64,000 bases of DNA from assembly GCF_033153115.1 (NCBI RefSeq), contig NW_026889751.1, positions 62,001 through 126,000 on the forward strand, written 5' to 3'. This stretch comes from Saccostrea echinata. Lineage: Eukaryota. Of the stretch, positions 51,951 to 64,000 are shown piece by piece. The notes beneath the pieces were generated by a model. That model was not told where the DNA came from, did not search any database, and was given only the letters and a program-made list of their open reading frames with translations. The stretch's first letter is position 1; each line of letters opens with the position of its first letter. The position numbers and the translations under genes were made by a program.

Positions 51951-52569
51951 CTGTCATTTGATTAAAAAAAAATAAATATTCTAATTCTCCTGCAGCATAA
52001 AAAAAAAATCACAACAAAACAAACAACAAACAAAAATATGGGATCAACGCAGGATTTTCTGCAAACTTGTTCGTAAATACTATAATTCACTCATGATTAT
52101 AATTGGAAGATAATCATTTTAAATTAAGCAAGTATTGTCAGTTGCATTTATCTGTTACAACTTACAAGTGAACTTTTTATAATGTTTACAGACTCATCAG
52201 TTGCTCTGAAACAGGACGAGTGGCATGATCGTGACCTTGAAGAAAAAAGTTAAAAAAAATTAAATATACAAAGAGAATTATTTGCACAAATAAAATATCG
52301 AGTTTCGTCCTCGGGTAGATTGAATGGGGTCGTATGTTAGCGGTAGCTCAGTGCGCTGGATCGAGGCAAACTCGTGGTTTTAACTAGAAACTAGGATTCA
52401 TAGTACAAAAGCCTTCAGAAGCAGTGACAATTATATACATCAGTTTTGACAGCTGTTAGGAAAAAAATACAAGGTGGTTGTTTGCTGCTGATACTGCATG
52501 AACATTTGGTGTAAATGAACGATTTTATTGTTAGAGGATCCGTACAAGAACTTGGAAGAAAGTCGTAAA

Positions 52570-53580
52570 ATGGGAAAGAAATCCGACAGTGAAATAAAAC
52601 ATTTTCTGTTCGAAAACCTCACTTTACTCTTGATTTTCACTGCATTGTCGCTGTTATGTCAGCTCACAACCATTGCGACACCGGGATGGATGAAGTTCCA
52701 TTTGGAGTTCTACGATGACGTCATAGAGTCGTCTGCGACAAACGGGTCCACTGGTACTATATCTGACCTGTCGGCAGAAGTATCGGCTGGACTTTGGTTT
52801 TTTTCATTCTGCTTTGAAGGACAATACCAAAACGGAACTGAATTAGCCTGTTTTACAGAAACCTTTGTTGATTATGATAACAAACACCTATCTAAGTTTC
52901 ACGTCCAACATCTTGAATTACTCAAAGAATTTTGCTGTAAGTAATTTCTTGTACTTTATATACCATTTCTTATTTGTTTTATAGTCTATGAATGCCCTTT
53001 TATGCTAATTTTACTTTTTCCAGTCAATGCATTAAGTGGCCTTTTGGAGTACCAGATTGAGGCATCCATTAGCATAGCCTGCCTCATGATAGGGTTAGTG
53101 TCGTTTCTTCTGTACTACAGACCGAAGGTTATAAGACGGGGATTTGGCATTGTAGCATGCGCTTGTTTTGCAGTTTCAGGTGGGGAATTTAATATTTTGC
53201 TGGGTGAAAAACCAAGTTTTCAATATACCGACGCATTAATCATAAAGACTTTGTACACTTTTTCAGCTATCATGCTATGGGTAGTTGTTGGTAAGATAAC
53301 TACCATCACCCTCCAGATGAAGAAGACTTTCCAGTTCCCTGCAGCGGCGAGTCACGTGACTATTACCGTCCTTATCCCCTGGTGTCTGATTGTGGCTGGA
53401 GCAGCCGCCTTGATGACGTCATTCTCTACCATAACTTTTCTTGTCTATCTGGCCCAGGACAAAACACCAGATAATAAATACCACAAGACAGAAATTCGAG
53501 AGCCTATTTTACAGGACGACCATCTGCCGTGCTGTTCTCATAACAATAACCATTCAATACCCATGACACGTTTTAAGTAA
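52570..53580 (+). CDS. Four-TM claudin/PMP22-like membrane protein. Exons 52570-52936, 53024-53179, 53267-53580
   Basis: TM1 followed by ATPGW, a GLW....C..C extracellular loop signature, then three further hydrophobic segments. GT-AG introns are in phase. Confidence 0.75.
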
Positions 53581-54636: not shown

Positions 54637-54812
54637 TCAAATGGAGAAAAAAAGTCTCTTCTTGTACAAAACCAGTGCTACAAGGACAAAGAATACTGTG
54701 CCCCATAAGTCCATAAAGAGTAGAGCAAAATGTTCAGAAGACACTTTCCAGCTGATTGGAAAATGACGATGTAAAACTTCATGTCCCATGTACAACAGAA
54801 TAGGGTTCATAC
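54637..54812 (-). CDS. HGSNAT: HGSNAT alternative terminal exon, distal copy (176 nt coding)
   Basis: ttttccag acceptor. [24 protein letters not shown]...[11 protein letters not shown]. Confidence 0.88.
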
Positions 54813-57800
54813 CTGGAAAAGGAAAATTTTTATACATTAATATTCCATTTATGCTGCTATTGAATAACTTACTCAGTCTTTTCATGAGTTACCAGGTATA
54901 CACAAATTTGTATTAAACATGTTCACTTTGCAAAACTTTTGATCCAAATCACTTGAAAAGTGCAAGTGTACTTTGTTAATTTCTTGTTTGTCAACAATTT
55001 TTCTAATAATTAAAAAAAAAGCATGTCTTGAAATAAATTGAATACCTTAACAAAATTATGTAACTGAGGATTTAGAGAAGTTCTGCCTTTTATTTTACAA
55101 GGAAAAAATTTAAATGGTAAGCATTATTGGGTAATTTAAGCTGCACTGTATTGCAGATAAAAAATGAAACTGCTAGTTGTATTTTTTTCCAAAGCAGTGC
55201 ACATCTGTGTCATGATATCATTAACATCAGATGAAATAAAGAACAGTGAAAACCCTTGTTTTCTGGCTTAATTCCAGAGTGGATTATAAACATAATGCCC
55301 ATAAGACAATGCTCACCTGAGTCACATTAATCATCAAGAATTAAAGCTTTTTAAATGGGCATGCAGATCTTTTTGATAACTATACCATTTTTCAACATAG
55401 CAATCAAAAACTTTAGTTTTAAAAGTAGAAAATGTTTTGTTTGGGGTCTCCATAGGACTTCAAACCAGTTTGTGATTTTAGCATGAAGCCAACCTGGAGA
55501 AGACTGAAATCTATTTCAAAAAGACTGAAAACTTTAGTTTACAAGGAATTTCAAAAAGTTAACAAATGACAAGACTTTTTTAATTAAACTGTTAGAAACG
55601 GAAGTGACTTGGCTGAAGCTGAAAATGAATCTCTCAACAAGACTGTAATGCCTAGCTTGGAATTACACACTTCTCAAAATCAGAAGCATCACGTTGGGAT
55701 TTTAACCAATTCCTTTAGAAAGTAACAAGAAGTCTCCATATTCTGCATTTATATGTATATCAATGTACAAAATTTACACATTTGAATATAGAGAAATGTT
55801 AAAAAGTGCACCATTCAGAAAGACAACAAAAACTTTGATTGTATAAACTCCGCTTAATTTAGGTAAAAAGCAAATGCAAGGTATAATTATGGTACTTAGT
55901 GTTTGAGTGATACATAAAGCAGCATATCTTAAGGGCTGTATTCATAACAGATTTCAATATAAACCTGTCATTCAAAAGATATTTCTACATTTTTATGCTA
56001 AATTTTCTTTCTTGCAATTTAACTAGCCTTTCTTATGTAAGATTGGTACACTGCAATGATAAAAATTGCATTTGATTTCAGGAAAATGGGATGTTCAGTT
56101 TTGGGATTTGCTAGGGAGAGTTATATAATTGCAATTCTCACATATTAGTTTTCAAATGGCGATGTAAATCTTTTTACAATGCATCATGTAGGTAAAGAGA
56201 CAAAAGAAGGCTGGGCCCCACAAGTGTAGTGCCAGAAGCTGCCAGTGGTTTTCATCCACCTTCCAACCAACAGGGAAAAAATTCTGATACGTAGTGTGGG
56301 CAATGTACATAAAAATGGAGTTCATGCCTGTCAAAGGACAAGTACCACAGAGCATTTTATCTAAATACTGTGTCATCAACAGCATATCTTATAAGATACA
56401 TTTTATTTAATTAACTCCATATTTAAACTTCCAATTATATGTACAGTTAATAATTTTTTTGAGTATAAACTGATGTCACTATGTACATATATGTGTATAT
56501 CAAGTATTTAATATAAGCATGTATATGTTAAAAAAAAATATCTTTATCTTTTAACAATGACTGTATCCCTCTTTTTTTTTTTTATTTATCTTTGAAATAA
56601 ACATCTTCTCTTAATTTTAGTAATATATCAAAACAGCAATATTCTTGTGTAGTTGAAAAAAAGTGAATAAAATCTCTCTTTGTTGTACGTCTAACTCACT
56701 GATCTAATTGATAAAACTCAGAAGTTATTGTTGATGATTTACTTTTTACATTAATGTGTAATTAATGAAGATAATAGAAGAGGTGTTTAGCACCTTACCT
56801 GGGAAATAAAATGGTGCCCCACTCCACACTTTATAAACATCTATGGTAAGGTAACAAAATGCTAACAAGAAAAAGGCAAAGCCTGCCATGCACAGAACAA
56901 AAGATAATGACCTGTAAAAAATAGAAGTATAAATGAACTAGAAAAATCTTTTCAGATAATAATCATTGTTTGGTTATTTTCAATAATTCTGAATATGTTT
57001 TTTTTCAAAATTAATTCTAATGTCATTTTCATAAATCATCCATATTGCATGCACAATGATAAAAGCACAGATAATATATTAATGATATAAACTGAGATTC
57101 AGTCTTTTTATATGATGTCTTACCATAAATTTTTATTGATTGGAATTGCTCCTCCATCTTTTTTAAATTCACATAAAGCACCGGCAATTATACACTACAA
57201 AACACCATAAACATACATGTACATGTTGAATTCATGTCCCATAAAATGTATCATGAATCTCTTCATGAAGTGTTAAAACATTAATATAACCTGATTTCTA
57301 GTGTAATTCACATTCTCCACAGCTGCATCCATTTGCAAAGTTTTTTTGATTCTAGGCCTTAAAACTACATAAGTCCAGAAGGAATTTGACGTACTTGAAC
57401 ATATCATCTTAATTAAAGATCACAGCCACCTTAAAGTGTGTGACACGCCTACCTAAGATGCATTAACTAACCAGTTTGATTATTCTATGCCAAATAATTT
57501 TCCAATTAAGAACCAGAAGGTTTTGCCATATTTGACCTTAACACCATTATTTGTCACAGAGACTTATATTTCAAGTGTGACACACATTCCACCAAAAATG
57601 CATCAGTTGAAAAAATTTGATGATTCTAAGCCACATAATATTTAAGTTACAAAGCTAACAGATGAATAAGGATGGACATGCATGCCATACATACACCCCA
57701 TTTAAAGGTACATGTATAAAATTTGAAAGGGAACGTTATCTACACTTACCAAAATTACCCCCCAAATTATAAATCTCTTCACTCGGGCTGCTGGCTCTTT

Positions 57801-60800
57801 ATATGTCATCAAAATTTTACCAGCCTATATAAAACAAAAATATCATTTATTGTTGTAAGAGCAATGTAATTATAGTTTCAAAGCTGGTATAAATGTTTTT
57901 TTTTATTCCAAATTTGATGAATAGTTTTTTAATTTAACATAACTAATATCTATAACCAAATAAAGTTGAATTTATTTAACATACTAAAAATCATGCACCT
58001 GTAGTCTCTTACCTGTAACCCTAAAAAACACAAAAATATGGAATTCAGTGTTCCTAAAAGCCCCTCTGGATCATAAGGCACTGTGGTTTTATATATCTCC
58101 TGTAAATCAAGAGATAGATTGTTATCAGAAAACTTGATCCAACTTAACATCATTTAATACACTAAGAAATATATCTGTTCTTCAAACCTTGCATGTAGGG
58201 CTTTGGTAGATGTGTCCTTCCCCAAACACTTTTCTATCAATGTAGCCTGCAGCACCACCTGTACAGTTCATATGTTGTCCATTTTCATGTAGACCACCAG
58301 GTCCTACATATCCTCTGAAAGAAAACACAAGAATAACTTAAAACATCAATAAACACAACAAAGGAAGATTCTTACTTTAGAAAACAGACAGCAGTGTTCA
58401 AAATATTGTATAAAAACTGAAAAAAATTTCACTGTATAATTCTGTGGCCTTGATGCTTTATAATTGTCCTGGCAATGACACAACTCATGTTACAAGACAC
58501 ATTTACTCTAAACAATTCACGACCATGCTACATCTTCCCATCAAACACCTTAGTCCTACTTTTGATACATTATATAACAGCTTTTAATGATTTACATTTC
58601 CAAATTCTCAGCTTGTCAGGAAGCAGGCCAGACATATACAGTAAACCACAGTTGTATGTAGCAAACATGAATTTACACTTACAGGGAAGTGATTTTCATT
58701 TCAGTTTTAAGATGTGTTGTGAACAGATATATAGAATTACATTTGTAATGAATCAAAATTGTTAGTCCCTGGCACTTCACTATATTAAAAAGTTTTGCTG
58801 TATGCTGATCATGATCAAGGCATGAGAAACATGATTTTTTAAAATCCATTAACAAAAAAGCTCATGATTAATATACAACATTGCTCTCCTCTCTCTCTCT
58901 TTCTATCTTACTTGGGACAGCCCGGTACATCTAATACGAAGGTGATAACAATATGGGCAGTCACAAAAACGAGATAAAATATCCATTCCAGCCAATAATC
59001 CACAATGTCTCGGATAAAGCCCCAGTAGGTGTACTGAAAGTAAGGAATTAAAATTATCAGTTTGATGACTGCTTTATTTTTTACAAACAGGTTAATTCTT
59101 CACACTGAATGGATCCATCCTTTGTCCATATGATAAATATTTCTTATTCAAGTACCTTGTTTATCAGTTGAGTTTGAAAATCAGAACAAATGCTTAATTA
59201 AGGGAATAGCAAATTCTAGAAATAATAACTTAAAAAAAGCATATACATGTACATGTATACATATAGCTCTTTGGTACACTGTAAGCTGATATAAATAATT
59301 TTGAATCAACTGAGTCCAAAATAATAGGTACCAGTATTTTGCTTTAACCATCCTCTACCTGTATATAAATATGAAATCATTCATTAAACCGAGAAAACCT
59401 TGTGGATGTGATTCATATGATTATTTTGTTTCAAACTACTTCAAGACATATCATTTATTTTATTCTTTAACTTTGACCCTTGCTTTTGATTACAAATCTT
59501 CATTTAATATTCCCCTATGTGTGACTTGGGAATGGAGTCAACAGGCAAGATTTTGGTTATTGAGAGATATCAATGATACAGACATATGACTTTAATGATA
59601 AATCAATTGATATAAAAATACACTGTCATCTGCAGGGACCTTTACTCTCCCTGACAGGCAGACAGACAGATAAAGTGATGTCTATATATCCGCCATGCAC
59701 GGGTGACACAAATAACATATGAAATTTGAGATTCCTTTTATTTTAAGTATAAATATTGCTGTTTCTTAAATAAATTCCACCTTGAAAGCTTTTATTTATC
59801 AATGTTTTAGTTTTACTATGCGAAACAATCATTTTTACTTTTTTATCAAGCCTTCTAAATTTCAAGCGTATGTCTCAGTACATCTTGCAAGACCTGCTGA
59901 AGAAGATGACTGGTTAACACACAGTTGTATTTTACCTTGTGCTAATGTATAAATTAAGAGCTAGGTTGTTGTTAATGAATAAAAATTCCATCTTATTCAA
60001 ATTAAGTCAAATGCAAAAGCAATTTATTTTGCCCAAAGTGGCCCATGTCAAAAAAAATATATATTTATGGAGATCCTGTTGAATAGTAGCCCTCTCTTGA
60101 AAACATCAAATTAAAAATATCGGAGAGGGCTATATTGTTGAAGCTAATTTATGTATATCTAATCATCGGGCTCCAAAACTCAGCAAACCAACTTAACTTC
60201 AAAATCAAATTTGAAAGAACAAAACAAAACTTACTGCATACCTACCATGCTAACATCCACTGTTTTGGCAAAAAACATGTGAATGGATGCCACGACAAAG
60301 TATGTTCCAGCGAACCTCTGTAATACGCCAGGTATTCTCAGCTTAGTAAGAGCAGTAGCTGTCAAAACAAATAAAAACTGTAGATTATGATAAAAAAAAA
60401 ACCCACAAAGTGTAGATTTTAACTTGGACCTAAGTTATATATGTCTCTAAATAAAATGTGTTTACCTTGTGAAGTGTCATTCAATATATACACATGTTAA
60501 AGATTTTATTCTTTGTTTAATTTTTTTTTCCTTTTTCACATGGGATTGATAGAATATTTACATCCAATGAATATTATGTCCTTTATTTCTTAAGAAAACC
60601 ATTGCTGTTTATCTGTCAGTAAACAGCAATAAGCATATCACCTGTACAGATTTCTTGAGCAGTGGCTGTTCCATCAATGAAACTTACAATGACATATATA
60701 TCAACAATACACTATTTCATCTACTAAATCCTACTTTCAATGATTATTTGTACAGATATAAGTATAAACAATAAAATGTCTTTCTTTGTTTGTTAGTATG

Positions 60801-63344
60801 GGAAATAACTATGCAGCTATTGCAGAAAAAAATTACATATGCATTTTTTCTGCAACAGCTGCAACATTAATTCCCATACTAACAACCAAAGAAAGCATTT
60901 TATTGTTTAAATAATTTTACTTCATATACATGTATATGCAAATTTTCTATAATTCAAGGCTAAAAATACTAGAAAGCTTAAGCATTTACTGAGAAAAGAT
61001 TGTCAACACAAAGAAAAATTTCCTCTGTAATAAATTCCTACATAAGAAGTCTGTACAATGTAAGTTAGACCTTGCTAATTTGCTATGATTGTTTTAATGC
61101 AGATACATACCCTCACATCCTCCCGTGTTTATCAGTAAACCCAACACAAACAAAATGCAGCTCCTCTTAAATATTTTCCAGAAAATTTTGTGTTTGGGGG
61201 TGACTCTTCTTAACAGTCCTGTAAATGAGTACACCATGGCTGTGCCCATAATCCAAATAAACCTGCAATGTTACACAATCCAAAAATGGACTTTCAAATC
61301 TGCAACGCTTCCAAACTATGTTTAGCAAAGTATACTCATTTATTACAAAAAAATATGTAAATTTATTATTCATACAAAATCAAAATTAAATTCCCATATA
61401 AAAATCGAAACTTATTATTTTGCATGTTTTCTAACTTTATTTTAAATTCCTTGAGGGAATTAATTAAAAATATTGTAAATTACAAGAAAGAAAACAATCC
61501 TTTGACCTACACAATGCTGTTAAATGTAGCAAACAATATGCACCAATGTTTAGTAAATAGAAAGTGCAGCAAAACAGAAGATCAGTGAGAGGTACTTACT
61601 CAGTGATAGCGAGTATATATAGGGTAAGTAAAATACGAGTGAATTACCATGGAAACACAAGATCTGCCACAGTCAGACCATTCCAGTCAGAGTGGTCAAA
61701 AAACCAGTAGCCACCACCCCCATAGTTCACAAAATTCATGATGGTCAAACTGATTCTACAAGCACCACATGCAGACAAGAAAATTCCATGTATATTTACT
61801 GCTAATGAATCTAAATACTAGTGATGGCATAAAGGCTTTTACCGGTTAGTTAATAGAGAATAAAACAACAACTCAATGATGCAAGCTGTACTTGGTGAAA
61901 CAAAAGCAATCACTGAATAATAAAAACATAAAAATACATAAGAGTGATTGTTTTATTAGTAGATTATAAATTGATATTTCTTAATCACTTCCAAAGCACT
62001 GTAGATTCCTAAATGTACGTTAAGAATTTATAAACACGTAATTTTGTGAGAAGCACATCTTGCGAAATAAAATTACTTGACAATACTTTTATTTTTCTAT
62101 GGATGAAATGAATGTAAACAAGAGGCCCATGGTGACATTGCTCACCTGAGCACTTCGGCTACAAAAAAAATGAAATTAGTTCAGTACTAAAAAATTTTAA
62201 TATAAAAGTGTTGCCCCACCCTACCTCGGGGGTCATGATTTGAAAAAACTTGATTCTACACTACCTGAAGATGCTTTTATGTAAAAATGACCAATCATGG
62301 CTTAGCTGTTATTAACAGTAAGACTTAAAAGATTTTCCTTATGTATTCCTATGTAAAAATTGGGTCACCCACTGTGGCCCCTCCCTACACCGGGGGTCAT
62401 GGTTTGAACAAACTTGCTTCTACACTATCTGAAGATGCTTTTATGTAAATATGACCAATCATGGCTTTGCTGTTCTTGAGAAGAAGAATTTTAAAAATTT
62501 TTCCTATGTATTCCTATGTAAAACTTTTATCACCCATTGTGGGGGGTTCATGATTTGAATAAACTTGAATCTTTACTACCTCAGGATGATTCCACAAAAG
62601 TTTCATAAATTCTAGCACAGTAGTTCTTGAGGAGAAGATTTTTAAATGATGCCATAAATTTTCACAAATTTATAATTATCTCCCCTTGAAACAAGGCAAG
62701 GCCCTTCAAACTTGAATCTCCTTTACCCATGGATACTTTGTGGCAAGTTTAGTTGAAACTGGCCCAGTGGTTCTTCAGAAGAAGATGAAAATGTGTTTTA
62801 AGTTTACATCGATGACAACAGCCAATGGACAAATTTTGATCAGAATAGCTCACTTGAGCCTTCAGCTCAGGTGAGCTAAAAACTCAACATCAACAGTCCT
62901 CTTACAATTTCATATTCTCACGATTTGACATTTATGAGTCATTTCACAAAATTAAGTCCTCGCAAAAAATAAGGAATTTACAGTATAATGTAAGTTCAAA
63001 AGACTTGTATTAAAATGAAGTGCTCTCATACATCTCATCATATATGAAATCTGACACATTTACTTCAAAGTAATACTTCATTAGCATGTAGAAAATAATA
63101 TAAAATACAGTAACATAAATCAAACACAGACTGTTAGTAAATGCAAGTCAGAGGAGATTGAAAATGATTGCTAATTCGGTAGCTATATATAGTCACATCA
63201 ACACCAAAGCAAAGAATGACATCATGCATGTCTCACCATGGAAACACAAGGTCAGCAAATGTTAAACCATTCCATCGACTATGACGGAAAAACCAGTATC
63301 CCCCTCCGCCGTAATTAACAAATATCATAACGATTATACTAATC
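54637..63344 (-). CDS. HGSNAT: Heparan-alpha-glucosaminide N-acetyltransferase, 3' part. Exons 63237-63344 OR 61648-61755, then 61111-61262, 60246-60358, 58912-59033, 58188-58314, 58013-58099, 57750-57824, 57124-57194, 56799-56911, then 56152-56327 OR 54637-54812
   Basis: Motifs [98 protein letters not shown]. The 5' exons lie beyond the window. Confidence 0.95.
56152..56327 (-). CDS. HGSNAT: HGSNAT alternative terminal exon, proximal copy (176 nt coding)
   Basis: ctttgacag acceptor. [24 protein letters not shown]...[11 protein letters not shown]. Confidence 0.88.
60765..60909. mobile_element. Palindromic fold-back element (MITE-like) in HGSNAT intron
   Basis: taaacaataaaatg.tttctttg.ttgttagtatgggaa..tgcagct.ttgcagaaaaaa, then its reverse complement after a short loop. 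Confidence 0.8.
61648..61755 (-). CDS. HGSNAT: HGSNAT catalytic-His exon, copy B (108 nt)
   Basis: [36 protein letters not shown], with AG/GT boundaries and phase 2-2. Confidence 0.9.
62116..62882. mobile_element. HINE with ~165-bp monomers, between the duplicated HGSNAT exons
   Basis: aaacaagaggcccatgg..gctcacctgag start, agctcacttgagccttcagctcaggtgagctaaaa end. Same family as 47595-48912. Confidence 0.8.
63237..63344 (-). CDS. HGSNAT: HGSNAT catalytic-His exon, copy A (108 nt)
   Basis: [36 protein letters not shown], with AG/GT boundaries and phase 2-2. Confidence 0.9.
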
Positions 63345-64000
63345 CTGAAAGTCAAAATTGTCTGATTATAAAATTAAAAGCCCTTTGTGGTCACCTATGT
63401 ATCATTTTCTTAGCATTCTCCCTATACATATATCACTTTCATGTCACCAAAAAAATTATAATATAAAATCATAAATACAATGTATTTGTAGACACCATAG
63501 TTTAAACTTTTCCTTATTACCGGTAGTCAGAAAGGTACATTTATTAACTACCATGGTACTACTTTGGTATTTCTCCAAAGGATAAAAGATCGATAAAGAC
63601 AAAATGGAGGTAAATCCCTGTACACTAGCTATTAGACCTAGATAATGAGTGTATTTGCTAACAAACTATTTTATCAACATGTATATATATAATTTATTTA
63701 CATGTAGATTTACATGTAGAGTTTATAGTTTCATTGCTTTGACTTTTAATCTGACTTAAGGGCAATCCAGACACAAAAGGAAAGTAACATTATTTATAGT
63801 TATAATAAATAAACAGAAATAATAGGAATTCAGTTTTCCTAAATATTCATATAAAAATTAAAGCCACTTTACAATATTTTGCTTGAATGTGATGTTTTAT
63901 AAATATTGGATTATGTGCAATTTGTGCACAAAAATAGCTTTTAAAATAGCTGTTGAATGATATTGTATGACTTCAAACAGGTCAAATTTTACACCTTATC

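Follow-up and report, generated by a model that had tools for sequence, protein, structure and literature searches.

Two old tandem exon duplications, probably used as separately chosen coding modules, in the HGSNAT gene of the oyster Saccostrea echinata

When a gene is duplicated at two exon positions and nowhere else, are the two alternatives chosen as a pair, giving two matched proteins, or is each chosen separately? The question is raised by a minus-strand gene of the oyster Saccostrea echinata, which we analyzed in a stretch of 64,000 nucleotides (nt) (NCBI RefSeq assembly GCF_033153115.1, contig NW_026889751.1, positions 62,001 to 126,000 of the forward strand); this whole stretch is called the window here, and positions are counted from its first letter. 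Inside it lie the 3' two-thirds of the S. echinata homologue of HGSNAT, the lysosomal transmembrane acetyl-CoA:heparan-alpha-glucosaminide N-acetyltransferase. One pair of exons, A and B, encodes the segment around the catalytic histidine, and the other, P (proximal) and D (distal), encodes the C-terminus. We consider it probable that this HGSNAT orthologue carries two tandem exon duplications that are older than the bivalve-gastropod split and are used as separately chosen alternative coding modules. Sanfilippo syndrome type C results from loss of HGSNAT, an enzyme whose mechanism is still debated, notably how the histidine acts at lysosomal pH.

RESULTS AND DISCUSSION

One gene with two duplicated exon positions

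A listing of open reading frames (ORFs) and a reading of their flanks showed both exon pairs. A word search with the ORF of exon P led to a full-length Ostrea edulis RefSeq protein, and from there a protein search reached S. echinata entries named heparan-alpha-glucosaminide N-acetyltransferase-like isoform X1/X2. The same word search with the ORF of exon D returned one cluster of genomic-looking ORFs from relatives, in which the stop was read as W, and no spliced fragments. The RefSeq predictions for the S. echinata gene are isoforms X1, X2, and X3 (XP_061196042.1, XP_061196047.1, and XP_061196055.1; P0012, P0011, and P0132 in our searches). Isoform X1 aligned with human HGSNAT (8vkj) over residues 94 to 663 (E = 1.8e-130), covering the luminal domain and transmembrane helices (TM) 2 to 11, and the exon pieces of A/B and P/D each matched the human protein individually. 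No Pfam family was found for the three full-length isoforms at E <= 0.001, and nine exon-sized ORFs gave no meaningful Pfam match; among precomputed assignments, none is listed for the oyster proteins, and other mollusc orthologues carry PF07786 or PF16401. The identity of the gene thus rests on alignment to the solved human protein, by which it is the orthologue of human HGSNAT. Equivalents of the residues N286, H297, D307, R372, D497, E499, and H614 of the human enzyme (663-residue numbering; structures 8VKJ, 8JKV, and 8TU9; PMC11357348, PMC11199644) are conserved, the first three in both exon A and exon B, the next three on constitutive exons, and the last in both P and D. The E615 equivalent is kept in D and is Thr in P of Saccostrea and Magallana.

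Aligned back to the locus with tblastn, isoform X1 showed 100% identity in most exons, with seven exons outside the window (extended coordinates 73236 down to 64136), then A, eight exons, and D. Only residues 257 to 292 and 579 to 636 of this full-length protein found a second match there. A preliminary description of this DNA, made from its letters, had proposed one gene duplicated at two exon positions with eight single-copy exons between them. This layout holds for the whole gene: the tblastn search found no further duplicates among the seven upstream exons outside the window, and the joints seen in RNA define exactly eight exons between the pairs. The window contains no runs of N, and all exons have AG/GT borders and an intact frame. 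The view of a single gene taken in that description, neither a gene duplication nor a haplotype mis-assembly, is equally upheld. Beyond the bare duplication nothing speaks for an assembly or haplotype artefact or for decayed pseudo-exons, and the data refute that explanation, leaving it next to no chance: nucleotide differences between the copies amount to 31% for A/B and 47% for P/D, with synonymous sites saturated, frames and splice sites are intact, both versions are found in other genera and are conserved across mollusc classes, and all four exons are found in spliced RNA.

Duplication of the whole gene was considered and rejected. A true paralogue lies on another contig, but it has a single catalytic exon and a single last exon, with only 40 to 80% identity per exon. 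This HGSNAT-like paralogue (G000:C46:2629504-2639493, plus strand; loci L006-L007) carries the motif FDHPPW and is of the CHD type; its type is conserved across molluscs and in one annelid (P0097-P0099, P0109, P0111, P0126-P0129). Several oyster orthologues of the present gene have isoforms with 42 additional residues (P0130, P0134, P0017, and P0135), in which the position of the catalytic exon is moved by the same number; this points to an alternative coding exon at the N-terminus or upstream. For S. echinata no isoform of this sort is listed.

The proximal C-terminal exon is a stop-containing cassette

Of six RNA runs found (their kind was guessed), four (X1, X2, X3, and X5) were mapped on positions 55791 to 61790 of the window. 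This 6,000-nt stretch holds B, the eight middle exons, and P, and exon A, exon D, and the upstream exon were seen only through the loose ends of contigs. Eight CT..AC joints (GT..AG on the gene strand) appeared in all four runs and set the borders of the constitutive exons, with the frame open.

Exons P and D each contribute 176 coding nt in the same phase and are 38% identical (E = 5e-18); each encodes TM10b, luminal loop 5 (LL5), TM11, and the C-terminus, aligning to human HGSNAT at about residues 592 to 663. The acceptor of P is at 56327 and its stop at 56152-56154, and the acceptor of D is at 54812 and its stop at 54637-54639. Ten nucleotides after its stop, P has a GTGAGA donor that is spliced to D. 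The evidence is a set of 245-nt contigs in runs X1, X2, and X3, each consisting of 30 nt of exon 10, positions 56326-56140, and a further 28 nt whose only mapping place is the start of D (54783-54810); the exon 10/P joint is 56326/56798. Direct joining of exon 10 to D was seen in runs X2, X3, and X5, where loose ends at 56796 map to 54780-54810. Since the P donor is spliced to D, P is an internal cassette that contains a stop rather than a terminal exon, and D is always the last exon and the only terminal one. When P is included, D serves as 3' untranslated region (UTR); when P is skipped, D is translated.

The preliminary description had taken the proximal copy for an alternative last exon, which these exon 10-P-D junctions do not bear out. 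Alternative last exons with polyadenylation after P were rejected because P is spliced to D in runs X1 to X3 and none of the contigs reads through from P into the intron that follows. The P stop lies about 10 nt from the last junction, inside the usual 50- to 55-nt rule for nonsense-mediated decay, so P-containing mRNA should escape this decay.

The contrast between a GHE motif in D and AHT in P proved to be specific to Saccostrea and Magallana; P exons of Ostrea, Mytilus, scallop, and abalone keep the Glu. The P type is defined not by this contrast but mostly by LL5 and TM11. In S. echinata, LL5 is more basic in D (VLHRHFP) and more aromatic in P (TYQNFFP), the latter being nearer the human loop.

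The catalytic exons reverse the charge around the active-site histidine

A and B are homologous neighbors that agree in length and phase; each has GT-AG splice sites of its own, and an intron of 1.5 kb separates them. They share 30 of 37 residues (BLASTP, E = 5e-23), or 29 of 36 over the exon itself, and 69% of their nucleotides. Both align to human HGSNAT residues 277 to 312, which include the catalytic His297 (A through its paralogue and directly). The flanks of this histidine are reversed in charge on both sides, with FRHSRW (basic) in A and FDHSDW (acidic) in B; the basic flanks of A resemble human K296. The splice sites of B are the weaker ones (acceptor ...tgcttgtag, donor gtaatt).

Joining of exon 3 to A was seen in the main contigs of runs X1 and X5, in which a loose end at 61263 maps uniquely to 63238-63267. 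The main contig of run X5 is 3,999 nt long and reaches from upstream of A to beyond D, and that run has no P contig; in runs X2 and X3 the main contig also goes on past exon 3 in the upstream direction, by about 870 nt. The dominant contigs carry A. Exon B was found in run X5, in a contig of 181 nt lying on 61597-61756, whose match ends at the B acceptor (with a 1-nt ambiguity), as it would at a splice junction. At window position 61629, in the intron after B, this contig lacks 4 nt present in the assembly and is otherwise identical over 156 nt; the difference reads as an indel polymorphism that sets the individual behind the assembly apart from the RNA sample, which is labelled as another organism.

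No mollusc protein found in our search holds both an A and a B segment, and the two appear to behave as substitution exons of the mutually exclusive type, with exclusivity putative. Nothing that was seen enforces it. An inverted-repeat scan for competing RNA structures around A and B gave only short AT-rich matches of 71 to 93% complementarity, at chance level; one of these (61631-61652 with 63551-63572) overlaps the B donor, and nothing supports it.

A spider model shows a comparable arrangement. The protein from Caerostris extrusa (P0114, 525 amino acids [aa]) holds two equivalents of the catalytic exon in tandem, FHHAHW followed by FEHAHW, and other spider models hold one catalytic type or the other. 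A tandem duplication of this exon may thus exist in spiders as well, again with a charge difference at the residue preceding the catalytic histidine.

In the human structures, both modules map to the luminal entrance of the active site

Structural positions were taken from published human HGSNAT structures. In the human enzyme H297 acts as the catalytic base, D307 pairs with it in a dyad that lowers the His pKa, and the acetyl carbonyl is held by N286 (PMC11199644); all three fall on the A/B exon. The P/D exon starts exactly at the Pro-Gly kink of TM10. TM10b lines the acetyl-CoA pore, and luminal loops 1 to 3 (LL1 to LL3) and LL5 bound the luminal entrance, with LL5 packing on LL2 of the other protomer; the N-terminus of TM11 contacts LL1 and the luminal domain, and the C-terminal tail lies at the cytosolic entrance (PMC11357348). 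A salt-bridge network at the luminal entrance comprises H269, D279, R344, D469, E471, H586, and E587 in 635-residue numbering (PMC11357348). Four of these seven residues are on the cassettes, H269 and D279 on A/B and H586 and E587 (the GHE motif) on P/D. The earlier surmise that both cassettes shape the luminal substrate site therefore fits the human structures, in which they share this network and LL1 touches the TM11 N-terminus. On this basis the isoforms would probably be unlike one another in local electrostatics, in the pKa of the histidine, in pH optimum, or in the acceptor they prefer, and perhaps also in dimer contacts.

Age and conservation of the duplications

Between A and B the proportion of synonymous differences (pS) is 0.86 and that of nonsynonymous differences (pN) is 0.157; of the 32 changes, 19 are synonymous, where a share of 21% would be expected (binomial P = 2.5e-6). 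The P/D pair has a pS of 0.78 and a pN of 0.40. Because synonymous sites are saturated while the proteins are conserved, both duplications are by this measure old, with both members kept as coding sequence.

B-type exons, recognized by xHSDW and a GGGG motif, were found in Saccostrea, Ostrea, Magallana/Crassostrea, Argopecten, Pecten, Ruditapes, and Haliotis, beside the A-type exons of the same genes. In a tree of 36 columns, those of oysters, scallops, Ruditapes, and Haliotis formed one clade, with a Shimodaira-Hasegawa-like approximate likelihood ratio test (SH-aLRT) value of 85, which is not strong. The S. echinata B exon is identical to Haliotis B at 32 of 36 positions and to Magallana B at 35 of 36; its A exon matches the Haliotis A-type at 26 of 36, lower than B against B. 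P-type C-termini of oysters, Mytilus, Mercenaria, Ruditapes, scallops, Haliotis, and Patella likewise formed one clade (SH-aLRT 95, 57 columns). Both duplications thus most likely predate the split of bivalves and gastropods, an age claim that the short alignments weaken, above all for A/B. This split is of Cambrian age.

Annelid models hint at a deeper origin. One joins a P-like tail (ALHLWG...MH...IAI) to a catalytic segment that resembles B (FDHSYW), and another has an A-like segment with a D-like tail (P0070, Capitella; P0068, Owenia). The exon types may predate molluscs, although the trees place the annelid rows without firmness.

The two choices are not obligatorily linked

The preliminary description had envisaged a possible coupled choice across about 5 kb, which would give a canonical heparan enzyme and a neofunctionalized one. 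RefSeq models of S. echinata combine A with D (isoform X1), A with P (isoform X2), and B with D (isoform X3). The same three combinations are present in Saccostrea cucullata, scallops, and Ruditapes; Magallana gigas has all four across annotation versions, and the O. edulis models found are A+D and B+P. Among Magallana-like assembled-transcript proteins spanning both sites, 9 were A+D, 1 was B+P, and none was A+P or B+D (Fisher P = 0.1); automatic models and de Bruijn contigs alike cannot phase distant events. The Magallana-like protein P0159 has B joined to exon 3 and runs on to P and its stop. In the S. echinata mapping, run X5 has B and no P, and runs X1 to X3 have P junctions and no B, with the main contig entering A where this is shown (run X1). 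Since P contigs occur in runs X1 to X3 without any B contig, A pairs with both P and D. An obligatory coupled choice is thus not supported, given the RNA as well as the A+P and B+D models in RefSeq and the four combinations in Magallana. That both exon pairs are genuine alternative coding modules is, in contrast, supported by RefSeq isoforms, spliced RNA, and conservation.

A softer form of linkage would have the two choices statistically coupled or co-regulated, B preferring P and A preferring D, so that mainly a canonical and a variant enzyme are made and the other combinations are rarer. The contact of LL1 with the TM11 N-terminus and the shared salt-bridge network in the human structure would fit such a preference, as would the O. 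edulis models, limited to A+D and B+P, and the assembled transcripts, in which a B-to-P contig implies a sample where both minor forms dominated. Against it, A+P molecules must exist in runs X1 to X3, run X5 has B without P, and A+P and B+D are annotated in S. echinata, S. cucullata, M. gigas, scallops, and Ruditapes; moreover, the 9:1 table is not significant, and assembly favors dominant paths. We regard statistical coupling as unlikely.

Proposed use of the modules and points against it

In the reading that we hold probable, that of two separately chosen modules, the first would be the 108-nt pair, with A placing basic residues around the catalytic histidine as in human HGSNAT, B placing acidic ones, and the Asn/His/Asp set kept in both. 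A would be the default and B a minor, presumably regulated choice with weak splice sites, replacing A in a minority of mRNAs or in tissues other than those sampled. The second module would swap the C-terminal 57 residues (TM10b, LL5, TM11, and tail), with inclusion of P ending translation there and skipping of P leaving D to be translated. Choices made separately would give up to four proteins and, because HGSNAT is a dimer, mixed dimers would be possible. At the acetyl-CoA/glucosamine site, the luminal entrance would receive residues from both modules, and LL5 would in addition take part in the dimer interface.

Several points weigh against this reading. The functional difference between the isoforms is a prediction. 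The RefSeq isoforms are automatic models, which may combine distant events without phasing, and assembled contigs drop rare variants and can be chimeric. Frame cannot enforce exclusivity of A and B, since both lengths are multiples of 3. The junctions of upstream exons to A and B lie outside the mapped stretch, and the 25 letters upstream of B in the X5 contig leave its upstream partner ambiguous between upstream exon 7 (64136-64273 in extended coordinates) and A. The contigs of runs X1 to X3 contain no B, although contigs show presence and not absence. Productive B splicing was not seen directly in S. echinata, where the contig documents acceptor-side use and an unspliced donor: it reads about 51 nt past the B donor into the intron, where the frame gives W and then a stop (TAA).

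These last features would suit a B exon that is mainly nonproductive or regulatory in S. echinata, included together with intron retention or a downstream cryptic donor so that an immediate stop lowers enzyme output. The sole B contig does pass the weak gtaatt donor, and three runs lack B. Against it stand the strong purifying selection on the B protein sequence, with 35 of 36 residues shared with Magallana and 32 of 36 with Haliotis and synonymous sites saturated against A, and the retention of all three catalytic residues. The Magallana-like transcript P0159 passes from B into exon 3 and reaches a stop, and B-containing RefSeq models exist in at least 8 species. We therefore judge a mainly nonproductive B to be highly improbable.

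Tentatively, a wider proposal can be built on the two-module reading, which we would call conceivable rather than likely. Molluscs might possess a two-module splicing system more than 500 million years old that retunes the mouth of the luminal active site through the His flanks and through TM10b/LL5/TM11. Isoforms and mixed dimers might then differ in pH optimum or in their glucosamine-ended glycan substrates (e.g., less sulfated or nonheparan ones), with B and P co-regulated by tissue, and the spider model might hint at the same or a repeated solution in arachnids.

Relation to known systems

Events of this kind are well known. In human genes, tandem-duplicated exon substitutions (PMC9741552, PMC8373072; reviewed in PMC9013439) likewise involve adjacent homologous exons that are of equal length and phase and ancient, with purifying selection on both copies and isoforms that differ only in a homologous segment at a critical site. 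Unlike the entries of that human catalogue, the HGSNAT segment belongs to an acetyltransferase of the lysosomal membrane and holds its catalytic histidine, next to which the charge is reversed; exclusivity of the two versions is putative. An oyster parallel is the alternative oxidase (AOX) of Crassostrea virginica (PMC5589949), in which a duplicated exon is also alternatively spliced to give two enzyme versions; AOX is another enzyme with one duplicated exon, whereas HGSNAT has two duplicated positions, traceable beyond oysters to gastropods.

Coordinated choice of distant alternative exons has been seen with long reads in other genes. HGSNAT similarly has two such regions, which are in contact once the protein is folded; some 5 kb lie between them in the gene and some 0.9 kb in the mRNA. 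It differs in showing no evidence of obligatory coordination, A occurring with both P and D.

The human HGSNAT sequences matched hold one version of each segment, and the human HGSNAT literature searched describes no B-type or P-type alternative. A literature search, judged partly by titles and abstracts, found no relevant description linking HGSNAT with mutually exclusive or duplicated exons: papers in which both terms occur are splicing studies and reviews with other subjects, and the oyster papers listed do not name the enzyme. Within those limits, the supposition that these cassettes are undescribed still stands, with the qualification that the isoforms are already predicted automatically in RefSeq. 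RefSeq models of the S. echinata gene and its mollusc orthologues hold the A/B and P/D alternatives and are silent on exon homology, age, the stop-in-cassette mechanism, structural position, and phasing. The present analysis adds how the copies of each pair are related and how old they are, how P acts through its own stop, where the modules sit in the protein, and what speaks against obligatory coupling.

Molluscs would thereby offer a natural experiment, held by selection for hundreds of millions of years, in which one scaffold carries basic or acidic surroundings of the catalytic histidine. The same scaffold also comes with either of two forms of a helix-loop-helix, the one by which the luminal entrance is closed and the dimer interface lined. 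Comparison of the isoforms could show what sets the His pKa, pH optimum, and acceptor specificity of the enzyme. The gene is also a clean case for asking whether regions that touch in a folded protein are chosen independently; in the present data they are not strictly linked. For annotation, the lesson is that what looks like a second last exon can be an internal cassette with a stop, joined by splicing to the exon that truly comes last.

Exon coordinates and neighboring features

Exon positions are collected in Table 1, in which numbers 3 to 10 are counted after the A/B pair.

TABLE 1 Exons of the S. echinata HGSNAT gene inside the window
Exon	Position	Strand	Length	Content and evidence
Catalytic exon A	63237..63344	-	108 nt	TM2, luminal loop 1, start of TM3; AG/GT, phase, alignment to human 277-312, RNA
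Catalytic exon B	61648..61755	-	108 nt	Same phase as A; RNA contig in run X5 only; in RefSeq isoform X3 (P0132)
Constitutive exon 3	61111..61262	-	152 nt	RNA joints in 4/4 runs, frame
Constitutive exon 4	60246..60358	-	113 nt	RIPGVLQR motif (human R372 equivalent); RNA joints, frame
Constitutive exon 5	58912..59033	-	122 nt	RNA joints, frame
Constitutive exon 6	58188..58314	-	127 nt	RNA joints, frame
Constitutive exon 7	58013..58099	-	87 nt	YDPEG (human D497/E499 equivalents); RNA joints, frame
Constitutive exon 8	57750..57824	-	75 nt	RNA joints, frame
Constitutive exon 9	57124..57194	-	71 nt	RNA joints, frame
Constitutive exon 10	56799..56911	-	113 nt	Ends at TM10 kink (FYFPG); donor joins P or D
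Exon P	56142..56327	-	186 nt	Stop-containing cassette, AHT version; RNA, human C-terminus match, RefSeq isoform X2 (P0011) ends in P
Exon D, coding part	54637..54812	-	176 nt	Terminal exon, GHE version; RNA; RefSeq isoforms X1/X3; UTR continues below 54637

Within the introns at 60550-60990 and 58590-58790, many short, mismatch-rich RNA contigs pile up in all four runs. They look like a multicopy repeat or transposon expressed elsewhere and not like exons of the HGSNAT gene. On the opposite strand just downstream of D (52528-53580, plus strand) there are two ORFs of 138 and 192 aa with hydrophobic stretches and no Pfam match. The main contig of run X5 extends about 2.1 kb beyond the D stop, and this overhang would be either a 3' UTR reaching into the convergent gene or a contig that merges two transcripts.

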